DNA of 64,000 nt, taken from NCBI GenBank assembly GCA_002104905.1, contig MCFE01000201.1, forward strand, positions 1-64,000, in the 5' to 3' direction. Below are positions 18,510 to 31,901 of this stretch, piece by piece; position 1 is the stretch's first letter; each line of letters starts with the position of its first letter. The position numbers and the translations under genes are program-made. The notes beneath the pieces were generated by a model, which was not told the DNA's origin, ran no database searches, and saw only the letters and a list, made by a program, of their open reading frames with translations. Origin of the DNA: Basidiobolus meristosporus CBS 931.73. Taxonomy: Eukaryota > Fungi > Basidiobolomycota.

Positions 18510-19442
18510 TTGTTCCTATCAGATGAACTTGCGGGCCCCTTCGGCAAATCCCATCACTGCTCAGTAAATCAGCAGACCATTTTTTCTACCAAAGCCAATA
18601 AAATTCCCGATCAACCGCTCTCAGGGTTCATGACGGATGCATGCCAAATTCAGGCAACACAGGTCCAAGGGCTCAAGATGGTGGCATATGATATTTTGCT
18701 CGGATCCCTGGGATTGTAAAGCAATGGAAAATGGGCGCGTGCTCTGATCGAGTGGCTTGCCAATGAAAAGCCCATCTGTATCACATGTTTTTTCATTCGA
18801 AATTGTTGCCGCAATTGATCCAGCCTCAGTATCAAGATACCAGTTAAATCCATCCATAACAGTTGAAGTCTAGGCTAGGCAATGGACAGCCAGATGATAA
18901 GCCTCTTAGATCAGAGGAGTAACATGTTCAGTACGCGTAGGGACCCCCTCCAAGCCGACAGCTGCTTCGGCCAGGGTTCTCGACCAAGGATGCTATGTAT
19001 CTAAAACCAACCGTATTTCTCCTACCTATATCAATGATATTGGAGAGACAAAGAGGGTTTTCCGGGTTGTTCTAGATACAGGTATTGATCATTGAGGACT
19101 AGATAAAGTAGCAAAAATAAGTACTATAGGCAGCATGTCCTAGGGCCAGATAGCCATATTCAGTGCCTGTATATTGCATACATACAGAAAACAGCTAACA
19201 CTCATTTTTCATTTGAGAAGTGAGTTTACAGTCAGCAAAGATAACGGATGATGCTAAGAAAATGGTTCTTTTGTAGTATAAGACATGTTCAGCTAATGAG
19301 GCCATAGAAGCAACGTAAATTCTAAAACATCAAAAGCAAGGATGAAGCGAGATACCAAGGGACCCGGCAAAGCTTGTATGCTCAGATATGTCTTGTGTTT
19401 CTGCTTCCAGCCTATTGTTGGTGCAATTGAAATTAAATGGCA

Positions 19443-19554
19443 AAGGCTTATAAGCCTTGAAAACCGGAATAACGCTTGCCTGAAGAAAGATGGTTTCTTG
19501 TACCATTAAACGGAGAAATGCCCATCACTCTTAGAATGCTAAGCTTAGCATTCT
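19443..19554. repeat. Two perfect palindromes: 16 bp (19443-19458) and 22 bp (19533-19554)
   Basis: AAGGCTTA|TAAGCCTT and AGAATGCTAAG|CTTAGCATTCT, read directly from the sequence. Confidence 0.9.
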
Positions 19555-19877
19555 TAGCAAAGTAGCAGCAACCATTGTAGCTGTTTCTGTTAAAACTAAG
19601 GATCTCTATTGGATAAGCTTAGCACCACTTGACGTATATAGCCTATCTTGGCTTCGTACTAAGTACATAAAAACGCGAGTGCACCATTGTAACAATTCTG
19701 GTAGTATCAGAAGGTAAACTAGAAATCAAGATACTCAATATTCCTTTATCCATAGGATACCGTCGGATTCCACTGATTGCTAAAGATTATCCAGAAATAC
19801 ACATTGTAAACATACACAAGACTAATATTTAATATGTTCCAAGACACTGTTTAGCAGCTGATCCTGGATCGTTTTTA

Positions 19878-21182
19878 TTGTAAATCTGGTGCTTGTACCT
19901 AAATATTCCATCAACATGGTCACTAAGGTCATTGCATATGAGCTTTACTCTCTGTCAGGATTTCAAAAAGTCCTACTAAAGCAACAGATACCCACGGCAT
20001 AAAGATTCTCAAGGTTATTCAAAAGCCCCTAAACTTTGCACACATGTTCCTGGAACCTTTCTTATGATAGTGTACGTGGTTGATTTGCCAAGACCTTGTG
20101 ACACTATCAATGCCACCCTTACATACAACAATTCATTAAGTAAAAACCAAACAATCTACTTGTTCTTCCATTCACTTACAATGTCTCCAAGATACCCTCA
20201 ACATTATCAGCAGCTTCTGCCACATCAAAGACTCTTACTCTGCTGCCAAACTGACCTTTTAGCTCTTTAAGGAGCTACATTACCCTTGTATATGTCTAAT
20301 TGGCTGATTTCTGGGGAAGGCTTCAGGATATAAGCAGCATGCTTCAGCACATTCACACAAAATGGTCATAAGAAAATAATTGGTAGGCATAAGCCACACT
20401 TGGCTTATAGCATACTGTGAATAGGCCCATTCCAGATGGTCCATGTTAATAGACCTAGTTTACTTCAGAATCCTTTCCACCAACTGGGCCACACTGTAGA
20501 CTAGAGGTGCCATTGTAACAGTTTTGGAGATATCAGAAGTGGCGGGGAGTGTTGTAAGAGTCTTGGAGATATTGGAAGTGATTTGGAGAACAAGTAGATT
20601 ATGTGGTTTTCACTTAATGATTTATTGAATGTAAAAGTAGTATTTATACTTTTACCTGGTCTTGGCATTACAAACACGTAGAATAGGCTAAGGAAGGTCC
20701 CAAGAACATGTGTGCAAAGTTTGGGGCTGTTTGGACAACTTATCTAATTTTCATGTTCTGGGTAAATATTCTAAGTAAATCCCGACAAGGAATTTGGTCA
20801 GTATTCTCTAGGATTTGAAGGTGATGATCTAAGTGACTAAGTTAGGTGAATATTTAGGTGGAATTCCGAATTTTTACAACAGGGAGAACAGGTAGATTAT
20901 GTGATTTTCATTTAATGATATAATGAATGTAGAGGTGGTGTTTATACTTTTGCATAGTCATGGCAAAATAAACATGTACACTATGTTTAGGAAGGTCCCA
21001 AAAACACGTGTGCAAAGTTTGGGGGCCTTTGGACAACTTTGAGAATCTTCATGTCCTGGGTACTTGATCTCTTGGCAAAATATTCTTAGTAAATCCCGAC
21101 AAAGAATTTGGGCAAGATCCATAGACTATGATCCAGTGACAAAGTTGATGGAATATTTAGGTGTAATTACGAAATTTACAAC
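19878..21182. repeat. ~300-bp repeat in three diverged copies: one inverted (19878-20190) and two tandem (~20563-20880, ~20881-21182); probable non-autonomous DNA-transposon relic
   Basis: Shared blocks GAGAACA(A/G)GTAGATT, AACA(T/C)GTGTGCAAAGTTT(G/A)GGG, AAATCC(C/T)GACA, GAATATTTAGGT and TTTACAA occur in the same order in all copies. The tandem period is 298 nt (anchors at 20586/20884 and 20711/21009). Confidence 0.85.
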
Positions 21183-22479
21183 AGATATTACCAGTGATTC
21201 CATTACCGAAAGGATCAAACCAAAAATCTACATTATGCTGCCATTATTGCTGGTCTCAAAGAGAGCGGACACGTTGCAGCAACCATATCAAAACCTCTTT
21301 TGCTAGGCAACCAGGAACACTGCACACTAATTCTGGCTCCCGTAGTCCGTTCGACAAACTCGTTTTTCATATACTTCAGATATGCTCAAACCAATATGGA
21401 GTCTGATTTGATTTGACATCGATGTTTAAACTCCCGCATATTGCTACAAACATTTTTGAATATATTCCACCCTATCGTAAACTGCACTTAGGGGCCAGTT
21501 TGCCTTATATTGATGTAAATCTCCTTTCCTTGAGTTAGTAAAGCTGCAAGGGATTTGCATTAGCCAATTGGGACCACTGCTACATCGCTTTTCCATAATC
21601 AAACCTTGCCATTACGATTAGCGCTCCAAGGTTCGCCGGATGCGAGACCTGACTTGTGGATCAAAAATTCCCATACATTGTATGTTGTGGCCGTGAGTGA
21701 AAATTGATGTGAGGGTCAAAAGCAAAAAACCAGAAGTGCCTTTGTCCATGGCTTGAGAGATGCGGAGTGAAGGAAGGGTTACGTTGATTTGTTTGCCTAA
21801 TGGTTTGTAAGCAACCGGGAGCATTTCCATTCTTCCAACAATGCCGTATCCTCGAAAAAAATATCGAAATAAAAGCATTCAAGGTTATTGAGCATGTACA
21901 CATACAGCACAGCATGACTTTGGTTCCCCTCGGATGGTAGTAAAATATCGATATTTCAGCCAAGCCAAGGTATTTGTCAGTTGTGATAAGGGCAATCAAA
22001 CTTAGCAAAATGATGTTCCCCGCGTTTTCCCGGAAATCCCAATAGGTGCGAACCGCACTCCCGGCTGTCACACACATTACCTGACACCCAGTTGCTGCAT
22101 CTAACTATAATGATACCCATTACTGCAGTACACAAAAGTTGGTAGTTGTTCCAAGCTTAGAACATAGTGTAAACCTAGTCACTGGAAACGTACTATAATG
22201 GAAGACCTGGATTTTCCGATGATATCGTCCCGAGGGTTAGCTTTCAAAGTGGGTTGTGCACATGGTAGATGTTCAACAAGCCGATCTCATCTCCAGCATT
22301 CCCAATACTCCACTCTTTAATTATGTGGAAGGATTTCGGATAGAAGTTGTGGGTTGAGGACACGCTCACATGTAATTACTTCCCATAGCTTCCGGTGTAT
22401 ACTTAGGTAACCATGTATATACATTAGAAGTTGAATATTGCCCCAGTCAGTCATACTACTGAGTAGCTACTCATTGAAC

Positions 22480-23305
22480 ATGAGTGCCCGCAAAGCCTCA
22501 CACATCCTGGTTTCAAAATCAATAGCCCGCGTTTCTCTCTCCGCGAGTTGGCAACTTTATCTGGCCCAAATTATGCCATCGAGTGCTTGCCAGATCCACG
22601 TTCAGTCCTCCAATAATGACAAGAGAAGTATTGCTAACCTTGGATACTTTGAGTTGCCCGAAGAGCTTCTAAACAACGTCCACCCTACGTCTGTTCAAAA
22701 CGACTTTATCTCTCGTCAACTTCCTTCGGACGAGCTGGAGAGGTGGGACATAGGGTTAACCAAGTATCACGAGCCTGCCAATATTTATGATAAGGTGGCC
22801 TTGACAGTGGTCAAATCACTACGTATCCCCACCGATCTGTTCTCTCGAAAGAAGTATATGCACAGAGCAGTGGTATGTATCAGTATCTTGCCACTTGGTT
22901 GAGCGTCTTTAATATGTACACACAGGCTCTTGAGACCATTGCTGCAGTGCCCGGAATGGTTGGTGGTAAGGTGCTTTTCTGACTTGTATTCTGAGTGGGT
23001 GCTTATGTTATCTTCCCCAGCGGTGAGATACGTCACTTACGAAGCCTTCGGAAGATGCAACACGACGGAGGGAAGCATTATGTTGTGAATTCACTGGATG
23101 AACGTTTATGTTGAGTTGGCCTGTGTAGGTTGGATCACCCATCTGTTACATTAAGCAGAGAATGAAAGGTAATGGGTGATGCCACGGACAATACCGCCTG
23201 CATTGCAACACCCGACTCACCTTAATTTCGAGAATAGAATGCATTTACTTACCTGGACTCATTAGCTGATGAATTACTCTTGCTGGACCTACCATTTGGG
23301 AGTGA
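22480..23305 (+). pseudogene. AOX: Alternative oxidase pseudogene; multiple lesions and 3'-truncated
   Basis: KVALTVVKSLRIPTDLFSRKKYMHRAV|ALETIAAVPGMVG|A..RHLRSLRKMQHDG|GWITHLLH*AENER|MHLLTW. Lesions: +2 frameshift at ~23023-23030, donor GT>GG at 23071-72, E>TAA at 23152-54, and TGA at 23303-05 after PTIWE. No YLEEEA exon seen downstream. Confidence 0.9.
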
Positions 23306-23933
23306 CCTCGGTACTCAGAAGGTATCGAGTTTTCCGAGGGACTTGCCAGTTAACTCTCCTTCTTATATTAGTTAAGAACGTGAAGCAATAGTTACAGTGA
23401 GGATTTCAACCGAATTAAAGAATCTACGTTTTGGCGAACCCTTAATATACCAATATCATGTAGCAGTTGATGTGTTGCAAACTCATCCCTTGTTCCCCAC
23501 CTAGCATGTGCTGCTCATTCACTTGGCCCAGCCGCATATTTGCCCGTGAGGTGTGTGCAATATTCTTACACTTCCAGCAGTTACAAGATGATTGCAGTAT
23601 CTATATGGAGAAAAATGTACCGGGAAAAAGGAGGGCCCTAAATGCTTTATATTGATAGTAACACTGCGATAGTAGGATGATTGAAATGCCTACCAGAATG
23701 GACTTTTGCGAGTTTCGAAAATATGCACTCATCAGCGAAATTTGCAATTCTGCATACTTGCTAGAAATCTCAGCTCATAGCAAGTAAATAGTCAATATTT
23801 ATGTGCCATAATTGAATCTATTTGAGTAACCTTTGTTTTCGATTTATGGCCAATTCCTTAAAATCAGTTTATTATTCTATGATTGCTCAAAAGGTTGTGA
23901 TTAATACACTTTAGTTGGCGTTTCTCACAAGAC

Positions 23934-26735
23934 ATGAAGAAGCGTCCGAATTACTACGCCGTTAGGAAAGGGCGCGTCTGCGGAGTGTTTCGGAACTGGC
24001 CTGATTGCAACGCTCAAGTGTACAAATATAGCGGGGCAGAGTTCAAATCGTTTGAAACCTTGCCGGACGCTGCACTCTGGCTTGGAATTGAAGCTAAAGC
24101 CTTAGAATACTCCGAAGATATTAATGGCTGGTCGTGGACTCCCAAAGTTCCAGAGGAAAAAGGCATTTTCAACAGTGTCTCGAATGGAACCTTGTCTCCC
24201 GAGTGGGACAACTGCATCATGGATGGCGTATATTTGGATTCGTGCCCTGACTTACCGCCGCTAGAACAGCACAATCCCATCCCATATATATCTACAGAGC
24301 TTCGTCACAATGGATTCATTGCAACGCAATACACCTACTCGCCTTTTGCTGTTCAATACCCAGATTCAACCGAGCCTATTGCCAACGAAGATACACCCAC
24401 ACCACAAAAGCAGGGAGCGAGCGTTGGTATACTCGCTAAAGATGCCACCAAAAACGAAACGGCTCCACAGCTAGAATCACTTCAAAACACGAATCCTGAT
24501 GTTGGTAAACAAGAAAGGCCTCAAGGTGTGACCCAATTCTTCGACTGGAACGCAGACTTCATATCGTTCTCCGACTCTTATGAAGAATTCCAAGAGTTGC
24601 AGCCCGAGGTCAAGCTCTCAGCAGAACAGGAGGAAGTCTTACAAGCATTCGTAAGTGGCCCCGTTTACTCAAGCGTTTGGATGAACTGTGCGCATGTCTG
24701 ACCTACATTTCAACACAGGGAGAGAAAGCAAATCTCTTTATTACTGGGTCGGCGGGAGTCGGCAAAAGTTTTATTTTAAAGCAAATCATTAGGCAATGCT
24801 ACGCTTTGTCAAAGGTTTGCGTGGTGACCGCTTCCACCGGGATCGCTGCTGTGGCTCTAAACGGGCTTACCGTCCACTCCTTTGCGCGCCTTAACTTGGG
24901 CCAGGATCCAGCCACGAAAATGTGCGTATTTTACAAGTCATCGCTGCGTGTCGTGTTCACTCACTGACAAGCTTGGGCCCATAGCGCGGCAAAGATCATG
25001 TATAGCAAAGCCTGCACAAGCACCAGAAAGCTTATGGAGAAACTAGATATTCTGGTTATTGATGAGATCTCCATGCTTTCGGACGATACGTTCGAGAAGC
25101 TGGACCTGGTATTGAAGATTGTAAGGGAATCCTCGGTGCCCTTCGGAGGAGTGCAATTGGTTGTGTGTGGGGATTTTTATGCAAGTATATCTCTTATTCC
25201 ATGAGGCGAGGTGCATGTCTAACCGCAAGACCTTGTTGCAGCAACTCCCTCCGGTCCCCAGTAAGCGATATTGCCCAGAGTGTGGTTCGGATAATAGCGT
25301 TCCAGCACCGAATCACGGGTGGGATATGGTGAATTGTTTAGGTGAGGTCAACTTCGATCTGTGTGGCGCTCTGTACCATACAGATACAAGGTTTGTATTC
25401 CAGTCTCCAATCTGGGATGCTGCGAACTTCAAAGTGTTTCAAATGAAGCAAGTATTCCGACAAGCTGACCAGCACTTTGTAAAAATTCTCAACAAGATCC
25501 GAGTTGGGATTTGTGATGCAGAAGTGCTCGAGACCCTTCAGCAATGCAATCGCCCTGTGACCAACGAGGTACGATCCGAATCTTTTCATCTGGGAACTTT
25601 CTGCTTTATTCAAGTAATGGTTAGGGCATGTCTCGACTTTACTGTACTAGGGCTCAAGTTATGCGCGAGAACGCTAAGGAATTCGTGAAGATACAAAGCC
25701 CTGTCTACTCCTACAGCGTCATCAGTGGGTGGGCCAACGCAAGTTTCGCACATCTAGTGGAGCAAGTGAGAATTCCTGATTTCGTATTCCTTTGCCGCAA
25801 TTCTCATCACCGCTTATCAGGTTGGGCAGGGGCCGATCCCTGATACCATAAAGTTGAAAATCGGCTGCAAGGTAATTCTTGTCAAGAATCTAGACTTCCA
25901 TCGGGGCCTTGTCAACGGATCCCAGGGCGTTATCACCAAAGTAAGTCTTTGCACACACAGCTCCTGGATCCATCGCATCCCACTTAGCTCTGGCAGTTTA
26001 TCCCGATTAGAGTTTCGTCTAAGCATCATGAGTTCAACGACCAACTGATTTCCCCTTTTCAAGCTGCGTTTCAGGAATGGGAATCCATAGAGGCACATCA
26101 GTGGGTTCCAGTGGTGAAATTCACTAATGGCATTGAATGTGCCATCAAACAACATTACTGGACCGTTGAAGTAATGGGCCATGTAGTGGCATGGAGAATT
26201 GGGTTACCCTTGATCCTCTCGTATAAGTTGTCCTTTATTTCTTTGTGTAGCGTAGATTATTGACTCGTATTTCTTCCCAGATTTGCTATAACTGTACACA
26301 AATCCCAAGGAATGACGCTTGATTATGTTGGCGTAAGTTGCTTACTCTTCTATCGCATTGCTATCTTAGCATCACTCATGCTCAACTCGATGCTCTCGGT
26401 AGATCTCATTGGTTCGAGCATTTTCTCCTGGCCAAGGCTATGTAGCAATTAGTCGAGCGCGAAGCCTAGAAAACTTACAGTTGGATAGATTTAACCCTTT
26501 GGTCATCCGAGCACACCCATTGGTCAAAGCTTTCTATCAGAATATCAAGAACAACCCAGCCAAGAAAGTCTTGACACATGGTGGAGAACAAGAAACCAAA
26601 AACTCGCCAGAGCTATCGGGGCATAGTGAATACCAGGACGTTTACATAGCAAGTACGTTCCATGGGTCAGCTAAAAGAATTTGGGAGGAAGCAATCATAT
26701 CTCCTAGCCAGAAACCCCGATATTTTGATTCATAG
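23934..26735 (+). CDS. PIF1: Pif1-family 5'-3' DNA helicase with N-terminal RNase H1 hybrid-binding (Cauli_VI-like) domain; multi-exon, apparently intact
   Basis: N-terminus YYAVRKGRVCGVFRNWPDCNAQVYKYSGAEFKSFETLPDAALWL. Helicase motifs LFITGSAGVGKS, TASTGIAA, LVIDEISML, FGGVQLVVCGDFY|QLPPV, QVFRQAD, LKIGCKVILVKNL..LVNGSQG, FAITVHKSQGMTLD, PGQGYVAISRAR all splice in frame, using one GC-AG intron. Confidence 0.93.
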
Positions 26736-29257: not shown

Positions 29258-30035
29258 CCTCAATAAGATCCAAAGATAGAGACAAAGCGTAAGCAAATTA
29301 GATTATTCTAAAACCTCATTAAGTAGGTGCTAATAATAAAACAACATATGAGAAATACTCCCAGAGCATGGCCCTTGAATTTTCAGGCGATGATCAGGAT
29401 GCTTGGTGACCAATTATCATGGACCTACCATAGTGCAATGGCCAAATTATGCTAGGTTGGTCTGGATTATGTCAATAGTCTTGATGTTTTTGAGGAAAGA
29501 AAGTCAGTGCCATTCGAATACTTGAGGGTTGTCACGTGAGCTGACGTCGATGAAGTAGACCAACTTGAGCCACCCGGTCAGTGGTTTTGGCATTTCGTTT
29601 AACAATACTCCCATTCCCAAGGGGATCTGGCAGCGTAGCAGAAATGATCTATTCATAGCTACCTCGGCCGCCTCTCCATTGCGGTTTCGGTTTATTTATA
29701 TTTGCAGCGTATCGAGATTTACTCTATACGGTGCATTTCATTCCGGAGGGATAATTGTAGAAAATCGATGCAGTGAAATCCTCGTATTATTTGCTGGCTC
29801 TAGATTGGAGGTGCTACCATTGGATTTCGGACTGATATTTGGGAAGGAAAAATATAAGGCGTATACTGATTCTCTCAAGAACTGACTGGCCTGTAGCGGA
29901 GCTTCGGTTTGAGAATCATTTCGCTGACCGTTATAAATATCACTTGGAATGCAGATTCTGAGGTATATATACGTGGGGAATTACATCTTCACAACCAGAC
30001 TCTAATAACCATATCTCGCGTTGAACTCATTCAAT

Positions 30036-31901
30036 ATGCATTTCAATCGGAGATATCATATTCTATGGGCTTTGCTGCCTTCCTTATTTCAACCGGTATT
30101 TAGTCAGCTTTCAGATGCCCCTGTGAGGTTCACTCCTACTATTGGTAATACAGCACCATACAGCTACACTATGGCACTACCGTCCATCACTGTAACGTAC
30201 TTTGTCCCATCCCATACAGTGATTGGCGTAGTGGCTGGTTACTCAGGAACTGTGACTGTCTCATCCGCTAAATTCACGGATGATGTGGATGCGATCACAT
30301 TCACAGAGCTCTTCCGCGGCTCGTCTGTTGTGAATACCTATCCTGCGAGCACCGTGATAAGAGATCTCCCACCTAGAACTGTTTACCAAAATATCAATCC
30401 CACTACGGTTTCGAGATACTTACCTACCTCGCTCTTTACTGCTACTTTGGGCCAGATCACGCAAACGGTATATAAAAATGTACCGGTTCCCACGGTGACC
30501 TTGAGTGGCCCAGATGACCCCAACAGGAGTACTCTATGGACTTACACCGAGCTGAAGAATTCGTTTAATCTAGAGGTCACCCTCAATGGACCCACTATTA
30601 CCCATCTGATAGGAAATAACGTCAACACCGAAATAGTTCCACCCGAAACAGTTACATATTCCGATGATGGCTCTATTTCAGTCACCGTTTATTCGCAGGA
30701 GACAGTGACAAACACGGGAGAACCTTACTTCACTGAAACACTTTATAGCACTGTTGCAACTAGGCCAGTTGGATCAACTGTGGTTACTGATTTATTCCCC
30801 CCTGTGTTTGTCACTAACTACCCTACGCTTACTGTCACACAACCAAGTACTACCTTGATGCCATCAATAATTACTGGCACAATCACACCGTCTATCAATT
30901 CGGTGATTTCTGTGGATTCGACCTCGCTCACCACTTTCATCAATACGCCTACAGTCACAGTAACTCAGCCAAGTGTGTCCTTGCTGCCTTCTACGATTGT
31001 TGATAGTGTTACACCACCTCCCTCGGTTATTTCGGAAGCATCGGTATCCTTAATGACCTTTTCTATCACCCCTACCTCATCTGTCACCATTACCTCTACA
31101 ATCCCAACCACCATTACTGAGACAGTCGGAAGTCCAAGTGGGCCAACTACTACCACAATGACAGCTTCTGTCACCATCAGTAGCACTGAAACTCAATCGG
31201 GCGTTGGATCAACTATCACCGATGGTATTTATGTCCCCTCTACTCTTACGGAAACAGCTACAATCCAGTCAGGCGAAAATGAAATCAACCCTGGAGATGG
31301 TGGCGGTGGGGATTACTCCACTGGCATGAACGGCCTTACAACACTAGTGACTAGGACAATTACCGCTTCTCCCAATGGTATTAATATGTCTGTCACTACT
31401 TTAGAGACTTCCACTAGAATCGCCCATGACCCCGTCTCCTTACCACATACAGAGAGTAGGACTGTCACCGTGACGACCACTATTACTGATCTTGATGTCA
31501 GAGCAGATGATACCATATCTCTTACAAGGACCGTTACCTACACCGAGACAAACCACGGGGAATCAAGAAACGTTATCACGGCTACCATAACTACGATAAG
31601 CAATAAAACGGATCCCAACGGCAACGAAGTAACGAGAACCACAACCGAAACCGAGACCGAAACTGAGATCAACGGTGGCATTGATTTCCTGGATGATAAT
31701 TCAAGCGCGGCACATTTCGATATAAGCACCGACAAAATACTTGCCAATCTTGGTCGTGATTGTGTCTCTGGTAGATACAAATGCGATGGCGATGGGTTTT
31801 ATCAATGTATCAACAAGGCTTGGCGTCGACGCCCCTGTGGCGAAGGAGCTCGCTGTTACCCTAGTGAAGACTACAAGGTAGCCTGTAGAAATTATGTCTA
31901 A
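30036..31901 (+). CDS. Secreted Ser/Thr-rich mucin-like protein with C-terminal Cys-rich chitin-binding module (CBM19-like); intronless
   Basis: Signal-peptide-like MHFNRRYHILWALLPSLFQPVFSQ, a long T/S/V/P-rich region, and C-terminal CVSGRYKCDGDGFYQCINKAWRRRPCGEGARC. Confidence 0.8.
   Translation: MHFNRRYHILWALLPSLFQPVFSQLSDAPVRFTPTIGNTAPYSYTMALPSITVTYFVPSHTVIGVVAGYSGTVTVSSAKFTDDVDAITFTELFRGSSVVNTYPASTVIRDLPPRTVYQNINPTTVSRYLPTSLFTATLGQITQTVYKNVPVPTVTLSGPDDPNRSTLWTYTELKNSFNLEVTLNGPTITHLIGNNVNTEIVPPETVTYSDDGSISVTVYSQETVTNTGEPYFTETLYSTVATRPVGSTVVTDLFPPVFVTNYPTLTVTQPSTTLMPSIITGTITPSINSVISVDSTSLTTFINTPTVTVTQPSVSLLPSTIVDSVTPPPSVISEASVSLMTFSITPTSSVTITSTIPTTITETVGSPSGPTTTTMTASVTISSTETQSGVGSTITDGIYVPSTLTETATIQSGENEINPGDGGGGDYSTGMNGLTTLVTRTITASPNGINMSVTTLETSTRIAHDPVSLPHTESRTVTVTTTITDLDVRADDTISLTRTVTYTETNHGESRNVITATITTISNKTDPNGNEVTRTTTETETETEINGGIDFLDDNSSAAHFDISTDKILANLGRDCVSGRYKCDGDGFYQCINKAWRRRPCGEGARCYPSEDYKVACRNYV

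Follow-up and report, generated by a model that had tools for sequence, protein, structure and literature searches.

Pif1 helicases remove RNA:DNA hybrids. A passage of PMC10641170, citing Tran et al. 2017, places the PIF1-family helicases among the R-loop resolvers and credits them with the suppression of R-loop instability. The canonical PIF1, Rrm3 and Pfh1 proteins and metazoan PIF1 are devoid of a hybrid-binding domain (HBD); metazoan PIF1 carries PF25344 in its place, and the yeast proteins have long disordered N-termini. In eukaryotic RNase H1 (human, 3BSU/6VRD; yeast, 1QHK), the HBD is followed by a flexible linker and then by the catalytic module.

The HBD and the helicase are found together in Basidiomycota, where Cauli_VI plus PIF1 (PF01693+PF05970) is the usual PIF1 architecture, present in dozens of named species of genera such as Coprinopsis, Cryptococcus and Kwoniella (about 60 clusters in one listing). 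These proteins, exemplified by Coprinopsis cinerea okayama7 pif1 (P0185), Cryptococcus neoformans PIF1 (P0321) and those of Kwoniella, Paxillus and Scleroderma (P0156), consist of a single N-terminal Cauli_VI/HBD, a linker and a PIF1 core that includes a 2B domain. Both domains are likewise joined in the alga Mesostigma viride and on giant-virus-like metagenome contigs. A statement in Andis et al. (bioRxiv 10.1101/163188, citing reference 14) extends the list to amoebae, in which an RNase H1-like nucleic-acid-binding motif accompanies the PIF1 core; this likeness is one of description. The literature that we searched yielded no biochemistry of any HBD-PIF1 protein.

Here we describe an HBD-Pif1 gene of Basidiobolus meristosporus (NCBI assembly GCA_002104905.1), a non-Dikarya fungus, located in a 64,000-nucleotide stretch of DNA that was analyzed as a whole and is called the window below. 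The basidiomycete PIF1 proteins are the best sequence matches to its product and have the same organization. The first-pass annotation of the locus had regarded the fusion as potentially novel, on the assumption that the HBD is absent from the canonical Pif1 proteins of fungi. This assumption is wrong for Basidiomycota, and the novelty falls with the wide cataloguing of the architecture there, in Mesostigma and on the virus-like contigs. The HBD-PIF1 proteins are a known, widespread architectural class, to which the Basidiobolus gene adds a divergent member.

Gene structure

The gene occupies positions 23934..26735 of the forward (+) strand, on which all of the features described below are located. 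It extends from the ATG at 23934 to the TAG at 26733–26735, and our model of nine exons and eight introns, which aligns end to end with the Pif1 homologues, encodes a protein of 770 amino acids (~86 kDa). The ~2.3 kb of coding sequence runs through the nine exons without a stop or frameshift. All eight introns are of consensus type and 55–70 nt long, one of them is of the GC-AG type, and every one of the eight splice sites is usable. The gene coordinates and the in-frame intron 1 (24651..24718; 68 nt, GT-AG with GTAAGT...CAG, phase 0) had been given exactly in the first-pass annotation, down to the ATG, the stop and the splice; the single intron that it named is real, but is one of eight. Domain searches and fold predictions were run exon by exon, and the work on the spliced protein was performed by script.

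The public annotation of the locus is limited to a 117-amino-acid 3′ fragment (26312–26735), in which intron 8 and the stop are identical to those of the nine-exon model. The HBD-Pif1 gene is apparently intact, yet unannotated publicly apart from its 3′ end.

The N-terminal hybrid-binding domain

Residues 7–51 (23952..24086) form an RNase H1-type HBD, as identified by Pfam, PDB sequence matches and the predicted fold. Residues 7–49 of exon 1 match PF01693 Cauli_VI over HMM positions 2–44 of 44 (E 3.2e-17; 62.9 bits, against a gathering score of 21 bits), and the same residues are recognizably similar in sequence to two PDB chains, 1QHK and 3BSU. In the AlphaFold model of exon 1, residues 1–50 are predicted with a pLDDT of 90–97 and adopt a β-β-α-β-α fold (strands 7–12, 17–19 and 36–40; helices 22–29 and 43–50). 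The best Foldseek match of this model is the human HBD, 3BSU, with a TM score of 0.91 and an rmsd of 0.6 Å. The N-terminal domain of about 50 residues had been assigned to the RNase H1/Cauli_VI family from the letters of the sequence, and both the HMM and the fold bear this out.

The residues Y8, W22, F37 and K38 correspond to Y29, W43, F58 and K59 of the human HBD, and all four are conserved. Y29 and F58 were reportedly described as hybrid-contact residues of the human domain by Nowotny and colleagues in 2008. The roles of W43, K59 and K60 in hybrid binding were established with the binding-dead WKK-A mutant of the human HBD (PMC8677849). The position of K60 is occupied by Ser in the Basidiobolus domain, and Ser is also the commonest residue there among 45 HBDs (22 Ser, 11 Lys, 11 Gly). 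The Agaricomycete HBDs shown in our alignment have an additional residue (GREGP/GRDGP) that the Basidiobolus HBD lacks. The identity of the Basidiobolus HBD is 35–40% to PIF1-linked HBDs versus 32–48% to other HBDs, and it is therefore no closer to the former than to the latter.

No exon gave a match to the RNase_H catalytic domain (PF00075) at E≤1, as expected from the first-pass annotation. Therefore the protein is not an RNase H1; compared with that enzyme, it has a helicase in place of the nuclease.

The linker and its junction with the helicase

The HBD is followed by an acidic, Pro-rich linker (residues 54–225; 24093..24608), which was delineated by its composition, pLDDT and codon score. 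This linker of 172 residues has a pI of 4.1, 28 acidic (D+E) versus 9 basic (K+R) residues and a Pro content of 10%, confirming the acidic/Pro character that had been noted for it. It is mostly disordered in the AlphaFold model of exon 1 (pLDDT largely <50), with a possible β-hairpin at residues 118–135. The codon score is coding-like over the whole linker, which contains no in-frame intron candidate. The HBD and Walker A are 196 residues apart, whereas in 66 HBD-PIF1 proteins this spacing has a median of 88 and does not exceed 167 residues; the linker is thus unusually long for this class.

Exon 1 ends with the start of the Pif1 domain, a LSxEQxxVL helix (24615..24650) recognized by alignment and fold. 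Across the exon 1/2 junction, it aligns without gaps to the pre-Walker-A helix that is conserved in the homologues, and a helix is predicted at residues 230–238 with a pLDDT of ~90. Since a single uninterrupted exon encodes both the HBD and the first conserved helix of Pif1, the fusion is independent of the predicted splices. The joining of exon 1 to the helicase, on which the first-pass reading depended, is thereby supported by homology, as exon 1 itself holds the beginning of the helicase domain.

The Pif1 helicase core

Exon 2 (24719..24921) encodes Walker A (24746–24769) and motif Ia (24824–24850), and exon 3 (24985..25180) encodes Walker B (25055–25075), the Pif1 signature stretch and the start of motif III. 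Both match PF05970 PIF1 (E 6.6e-15 and 55.7 bits for exon 2; E 7.1e-14 and 52.4 bits for exon 3; gathering score 25.9 bits) and together cover HMM positions 23–149. Intron 3 (25181..25241; 61 nt), the GC-AG intron, interrupts GDFY|QLPPV and was placed here because no other junction restores motif III in frame. The remainder of motif III was located in exon 4 (25242..25568), together with motif IV (25452–25469), by alignment with 31 homologues. Exon 6 (25821..25940) contains motif V as well as the 2B SH3-like domain, which matches PF21530 Pif1_2B_dom (E 5.4e-12; 45.7 bits, gathering score 23.9 bits). The HKSQG motif is located in exon 8 (26281..26332), according to the spliced model and the homologue alignment. 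Finally, exon 9 (26403..26735) encodes motif VI (26430–26465), a tail of ~55 residues without a known domain in Pfam, and the stop of the model.

Walker A, Ia, Walker B, the Pif1 signature stretch, III, IV, V and VI are all intact in the spliced model, in which the homologue-aligned motifs read GSAGVGKS, VTASTGIAA, VIDEISM, FEKLD..PFGGVQ, CGDFYQLPPV, VFRQ, HKSQG and GQGYVAISRA. Together with the PIF1 and Pif1_2B matches, they justify the earlier description of the Pif1 core as complete. By its sequence, the product is a Pif1-family SF1B DNA helicase, with a predicted activity of 5′–3′ polarity. The core, the motifs and the 2B SH3 domain are shared with PIF1, Rrm3, Pfh1 and metazoan PIF1, at an identity of ~34–36%.

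A 42-codon Cys-rich stretch (25260..25385), delineated by alignment, fold and codon score, follows QLPPVP of motif III in exon 4. It is missing from all of the 31 aligned homologues and, along with the longer linker, distinguishes the Basidiobolus protein from basidiomycete PIF1. In the AlphaFold model of exon 4 it has no secondary structure and a pLDDT of 39–61, a low confidence that is uninformative. Intron signals are present within it, consisting of a GTAAGC donor at 25261 and acceptors ending at 25341 or 25383, which would delimit an intron of 81 or 123 nt, respectively. By codon-usage log-odds, its first 27 codons lean toward noncoding; this score is indecisive, given that the HBD, a genuine domain, has a value nearly as low. 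The stretch may be a lineage-specific loop or an unrecognized in-frame intron. The zinc-ribbon matches in Pfam are too weak (E 0.2–0.3) to count as evidence.

Relatives and phylogenetic placement

The helicase of Basidiobolus is divergent. Its highest identity is 36% by BLASTP or 39% over the tree columns, in both cases to P0156, and its core is ~33–39% identical to the basidiomycete proteins, which are themselves 41–81% identical to P0156. The searches for a close orthologue were negative within their scope: full-library HMMER with exon 1 gave no match longer than the HBD, word-index searches (with P0086, with a 19-row alignment that included exon pieces of the gene, and with P0086 plus five cleanly aligned pieces of it) returned nothing closer than ~36%, and metagenome scans with exon 1 and exon 4 found no relative.

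In a tree of helicase cores comprising 39 rows, without Helitron or RecD outgroups, the Basidiobolus protein falls inside a 22-row eukaryotic PIF1 group (SH-aLRT 90), as a long, unplaced branch with a length of 2.21 versus a median of 0.62. A tree forcing it into the fungal clade was not rejected (p-AU 0.61). Forced monophyly with basidiomycete PIF1 is 18.2 lnL units worse, with a p-AU of 0.094, and is thus disfavoured, though not rejected.

Other fusions also carry an N-terminal HBD on a repair motor, as the Basidiobolus protein does: HBD-UvrD (P0130), HBD-PIF1-UDG (P0258/P0213) and HBD-PIF1-RING (P0198). Mesostigma P0034 and P0086/P0054 are PIF1 proteins with two HBDs, compared with one in Basidiobolus. 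These other fusions have extra domains or two HBDs; several of them are encoded on giant-virus-like contigs and belong to separate clades of the helicase tree.

Genomic neighbourhood

The neighbours of the HBD-Pif1 gene are ordinary, encoding TauD, bHLH, V-ATPase F, Vps18 and sirtuin proteins. An alternative-oxidase gene located just upstream is apparently decayed and is a probable pseudogene, indicating that the neighbourhood tolerates gene decay. A cluster of MITE-like repeats lies 3 kb upstream. The flanks contain no repeats that bracket the gene, and neither the gene nor the flanking ORFs gave evidence of a Rep/HUH or another element protein.

Discussion

Our analyses make it rather probable that the locus is an intact cellular gene for an HBD-tethered Pif1 helicase of a widespread class, which is targeted to hybrids as had been proposed. 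The proposal of an R-loop-targeted helicase was right in its anatomy, and hybrid targeting is reasonable from the two domains, although the rarity on which it was premised is wrong. Targeting of R-loops or other RNA:DNA hybrids is plausible on these grounds. The HBD would dock on an A-like RNA:DNA duplex, such as those of R-loops, Okazaki or primer remnants, and telomerase or retroelement intermediates, and this docking would raise the local concentration of the helicase. The helicase might then load on the neighbouring single-stranded DNA and remove the RNA strand in the 5′–3′ direction. Gene structure, domains, fold, conserved residues and the broad distribution of the class are observations; the protein's hybrid binding, its helicase activity and polarity, its substrates and its expression are inferred. 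The retention of the HBD-PIF1 architecture in dozens of basidiomycetes and elsewhere argues that the combination is functional.

The HBD could be genuine and yet serve another purpose, such as binding to dsRNA, general anchoring to nucleic acids for processivity as in RNase H1, localization or protein contacts, on an otherwise ordinary Pif1 that acts on G4 DNA, forks or telomeres. Members of this domain family occur in many non-nuclease contexts, including arrays in which as many as eight copies follow one another in tandem, and the fusions to UvrD, UDG and RING repair modules suggest a general tethering module. The presence of the HBD changes state at least eight times on the 39-row helicase tree, which fits a portable accessory. 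However, the residues that correspond to human hybrid-contact positions W43, K59, Y29 and F58 are all retained, the predicted fold superposes closely on a hybrid-bound structure, and the Pif1 enzymes are themselves linked to the removal of RNA:DNA hybrids. We therefore regard such a role as unlikely, albeit the most serious competitor to hybrid targeting.

It is less likely still that the locus represents a silent or decaying paralogue, so far spared by disabling mutations, with a working Pif1 encoded elsewhere in the genome. The 3′-limited public annotation, the long branch without a close relative among our searches, and the adjoining probable pseudogene would be in keeping with decay. On the other hand, the open coding sequence across nine exons and the eight usable splice sites speak against decay, as do the catalytic motifs, none of which is damaged, and the conservation of the HBD consensus residues; the linker also remains coding-like by codon score. 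That a mobile element or giant virus was the source of the gene, by way of a Helitron-type or viral Pif1-like helicase, is highly improbable: HBD-PIF1 genes do exist on giant-virus-like contigs and MITE-like repeats lie upstream, but the gene has eight spliceosomal introns, its flanks revealed no element proteins or bracketing repeats, and its core groups with cellular eukaryotic PIF1, apart from the virus-like clade (99).

Beyond the hybrid-targeted helicase that we favour, a bolder and quite doubtful idea is that the fusion arose, or was kept, independently in an early-diverging fungal lineage, as a specialized paralogue for RNA:DNA intermediates of unusual abundance in this genome. The marks of such a paralogue would be the long acidic linker and the Cys-rich insertion beside the DNA-binding face. 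If this were true, the recurrent gain of the HBD on Pif1 would identify hybrid recognition as an adaptive add-on.

To conclude, our work describes a non-Dikarya fungal example of the HBD-Pif1 fusion and mends a gap in the public annotation, rather than defining a new kind of system. As a natural and widely conserved fusion, HBD-Pif1 may represent a built-in answer to the question of how Pif1 finds its hybrids.

Gene structure and annotation

The Pif1 gene was assembled from the window sequence and predicted splicing as nine exons on the + strand (23934-26735), located at 23934-24650, 24719-24921, 24985-25180, 25242-25568, 25625-25765, 25821-25940, 25997-26220, 26281-26332 and 26403-26735. Spliced, the model is 2313 nt long and its 770 codons include no internal stop; its ATG, stop and first intron coincide exactly with those of the first-pass annotation. 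The eight introns are short (55-70 nt), and seven of them are GT-AG. Intron 3 (25181-25241) uses a GC-AG pair (GCAAGT...CAG), the sole junction giving an in-frame motif III (GDFY/QLPPV).

The public calls (GCA_002104905.1, MCFE01000201.1) place no gene between the end of TauD (18509) and 26312, and this uncalled span of 7.8 kb (18510-26311) includes most of the Pif1 gene. The sole call within the gene is a 117-aa product (26312-26735), which shares intron 8 and the stop with our model. As only this 3' fragment has been called, the full gene counts as unannotated, which explains why a HMMER search of the full library with exon 1 returned no self-match; it also returned no match extending past the hybrid-binding domain (HBD).

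Architecture of the HBD-PIF1 protein

The first-pass annotation described an RNase H1-type N-terminal domain, a long acidic and proline-rich linker, and a complete Pif1 core lacking an RNase H catalytic domain, and our analyses agree with each of these features. Residues 7-49 of exon 1 match the Cauli_VI/RNase H1 N-terminal domain in Pfam (E 3.2e-17; 62.9 bits, with a cut-off of 21 bits), and the N-terminal sequence resembles the yeast RNase H1 N-terminal domain (1QHK) and the human HBD (3BSU). The AlphaFold model of exon 1, which used 44 HBD sequences, has pLDDT values of 90-97 over residues 1-50, in beta-beta-alpha-beta-alpha order. In Foldseek it matches 3BSU best, a structure of the human HBD in complex with an RNA/DNA 12-mer (TM 0.91, rmsd 0.6 Å, 44% identity). 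Y8, W22, F37 and K38 are the counterparts of human Y29, W43, F58 and K59. The binding-dead WKK-A control mutates human W43, K59 and K60 (PMC8677849); the position matching K60 is Ser here, which is also the most frequent residue there across 45 HBDs. On the helicase side, Pfam assigns PIF1 to exons 2 and 3, assigns the Pif1 2B domain to exon 6, and detects no RNase H catalytic domain in any of the nine exons. Walker A, Ia, Walker B, the signature stretch, motifs III, IV and V, HKSQG and motif VI are all intact, and align with the yeast, human and basidiomycete Pif1 proteins.

The final 12-14 residues of exon 1 (LSAEQEEVLQAF) correspond to the conserved first helix of the Pif1 domain (pLDDT ~90), and the alignment across the exon 1/2 junction gives the same spacing from this helix to Walker A as in homologues. 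Since the helix already lies inside exon 1, the uninterrupted ORF 23934-24701 holds the HBD, the linker and the helicase start. Judged from the sequence and the model, the fusion is independent of any predicted splice. Residues 54-225 form an acidic linker (pI 4.1, 10% proline) that is mostly predicted to be disordered, with a possible hairpin at residues 118-135; its codon score stays coding-like, and no in-frame intron candidates were found within it. Between the HBD and Walker A lie 196 aa, more than in any of 66 comparable proteins (median 88, maximum 167).

In exon 4, the 42 residues after QLPPVP (379-420, nt 25260-25385) contain four cysteines and are missing from all 31 aligned homologues. 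At its start, at 25261, this stretch has a good donor (GTAAGC), and two in-frame acceptors lie within it, allowing a possible intron of 81 nt (end 25341) or 123 nt (end 25383). Left unspliced, it gives a spacing of 45 residues to the next motif, which would fall to 18 with the 81-nt intron or 4 with the 123-nt intron; homologues have 4-15. By codon score the first 27 codons lean noncoding and the last 14 coding, a weak measure given that the HBD itself scores low, and the pLDDT is 39-61. All three readings (a loop or either intron) stay in frame, and the helicase is therefore intact either way.

Distribution of the architecture

A local HMM found the HBD in 100 of the 252 proteins retrieved by Pif1 searches. 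Among the HBD matches, P0086, P0054 and P0034, the last from the green alga Mesostigma viride, are long proteins with Cauli_VI, PIF1 and Pif1_2B. Searches seeded with such proteins returned PF01693 (Cauli_VI) together with PF05970 (PIF1) in about 60 clusters of the best 120 listed, and all named clusters of this type among the matches listed are from Basidiomycota. The architecture is shared by the Coprinopsis cinerea 'DNA repair and recombination protein pif1', by PIF1 of Cryptococcus neoformans and C. gattii, and by many proteins of Kwoniella, Paxillus, Rhizopogon, Mycena, Phanerochaete, Pleurotus, Tremella and others.

A large set of metagenome HBD-PIF1 proteins (550-580 aa), with UDG and RING variants, is encoded on contigs of densely packed, intron-free and mostly orphan genes. 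Ribonucleotide reductase, kinases and glycosyltransferases are encoded there too. We read these contigs as giant-virus-like; two of them, L003 and L004, carry P0258 (HBD-PIF1-UDG) and P0207 (plain HBD-PIF1). Outside the window, we also observed HBD and PIF1 joined to uracil-DNA glycosylase (P0258, P0213, P0250 and P0407, about 800 aa) or to a RING finger (P0198 and P0219, about 790 aa), and an HBD fused to a UvrD-type helicase (P0130, 1157 aa). According to Andis et al. (bioRxiv 10.1101/163188), previous work in amoebae had found accessory motifs for 'RNase H1-like RNA binding' on PIF1 helicases. Given this catalogue, the architecture is already widely recorded and is not new, an outcome that the first-pass annotation had named as counting against its reading. 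Our literature search found no paper testing the function of an HBD-PIF1 fusion.

Proposed function

A preference for RNA:DNA substrates is established for PIF1-family enzymes. R-loop resolvers include members of this family (PMC10641170). The window protein carries the hybrid sensor of RNase H1, joined to its Pif1 motor by a long flexible tether. The simplest reading of the domain content, and the most likely one, is that the HBD would concentrate the helicase at RNA:DNA hybrids, where the motor would strip the RNA. An HBD that does not target R-loops, serving for example as a general nucleic-acid anchor, is the foremost alternative, and we consider it unlikely. It is quite improbable that the gene is a silent paralogue.

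Phylogenetic placement and genomic surroundings

The helicase core is only 33-39% identical to any of the retrieved proteins, the nearest being P0156 from Scleroderma, and its branch in the 39-row maximum-likelihood tree is long (2.21 vs a median of 0.62). The tree places it within the group of cellular eukaryotic PIF1 proteins (SH-aLRT 90), apart from the virus-like clade (99), and the neighbouring genes are ordinary (Vps18, V-ATPase F, a bHLH factor, the single-exon TauD and a sirtuin), with no repeats found bracketing the gene in the window; a mobile-element or viral origin is very improbable. Constraining the gene to group with the fungi (chytrid, ascomycete and basidiomycete) gave a likelihood slightly better than the free search (p-AU 0.61), and placing it beside the basidiomycetes was 18 lnL units worse (p-AU 0.094). 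From this placement and these tests, the sequence is compatible with a divergent fungal PIF1. Its HBD is no nearer to PIF1-linked HBDs than to other HBDs, and HBD presence requires at least eight changes on the tree, a count that unresolved nodes, and possibly truncated metagenome proteins, push upwards.

Several other features were observed nearby. About 3 kb upstream, direct and inverted repeats cluster at 19878-21181. Their arms measure 180-250 nt and are 73-82% alike, and the arrangement resembles nested MITE-like elements; it does not bracket the helicase gene. Alternative oxidase (AOX) pieces, absent from the public calls, occur in two reading frames at about 22600-23260 (+). They include LETIAAVPGMVGG at about 22929-22967, a conserved LLEEAENERMHL-type motif interrupted by stop codons near 23130-23170, and a second ENRMHLLTW near 23230; the ORF 22438-22899 has a weak Pfam match to AOX (E 0.003). 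We take this region to be a probable AOX pseudogene, decayed or duplicated. Downstream, at 30021-31901 (+), lies a single ORF of 626 aa whose product resembles a cell-wall or adhesin-type protein: it abounds in Thr, Ser and Val, has a signal-like N-terminus and is Cys-rich at its C-terminal end.

To conclude, the first-pass interpretation of an R-loop helicase is plausible from the domain content, but not new. The finding is of modest value: the gene adds an unannotated, divergent, non-Dikarya member to a widespread but experimentally neglected class.
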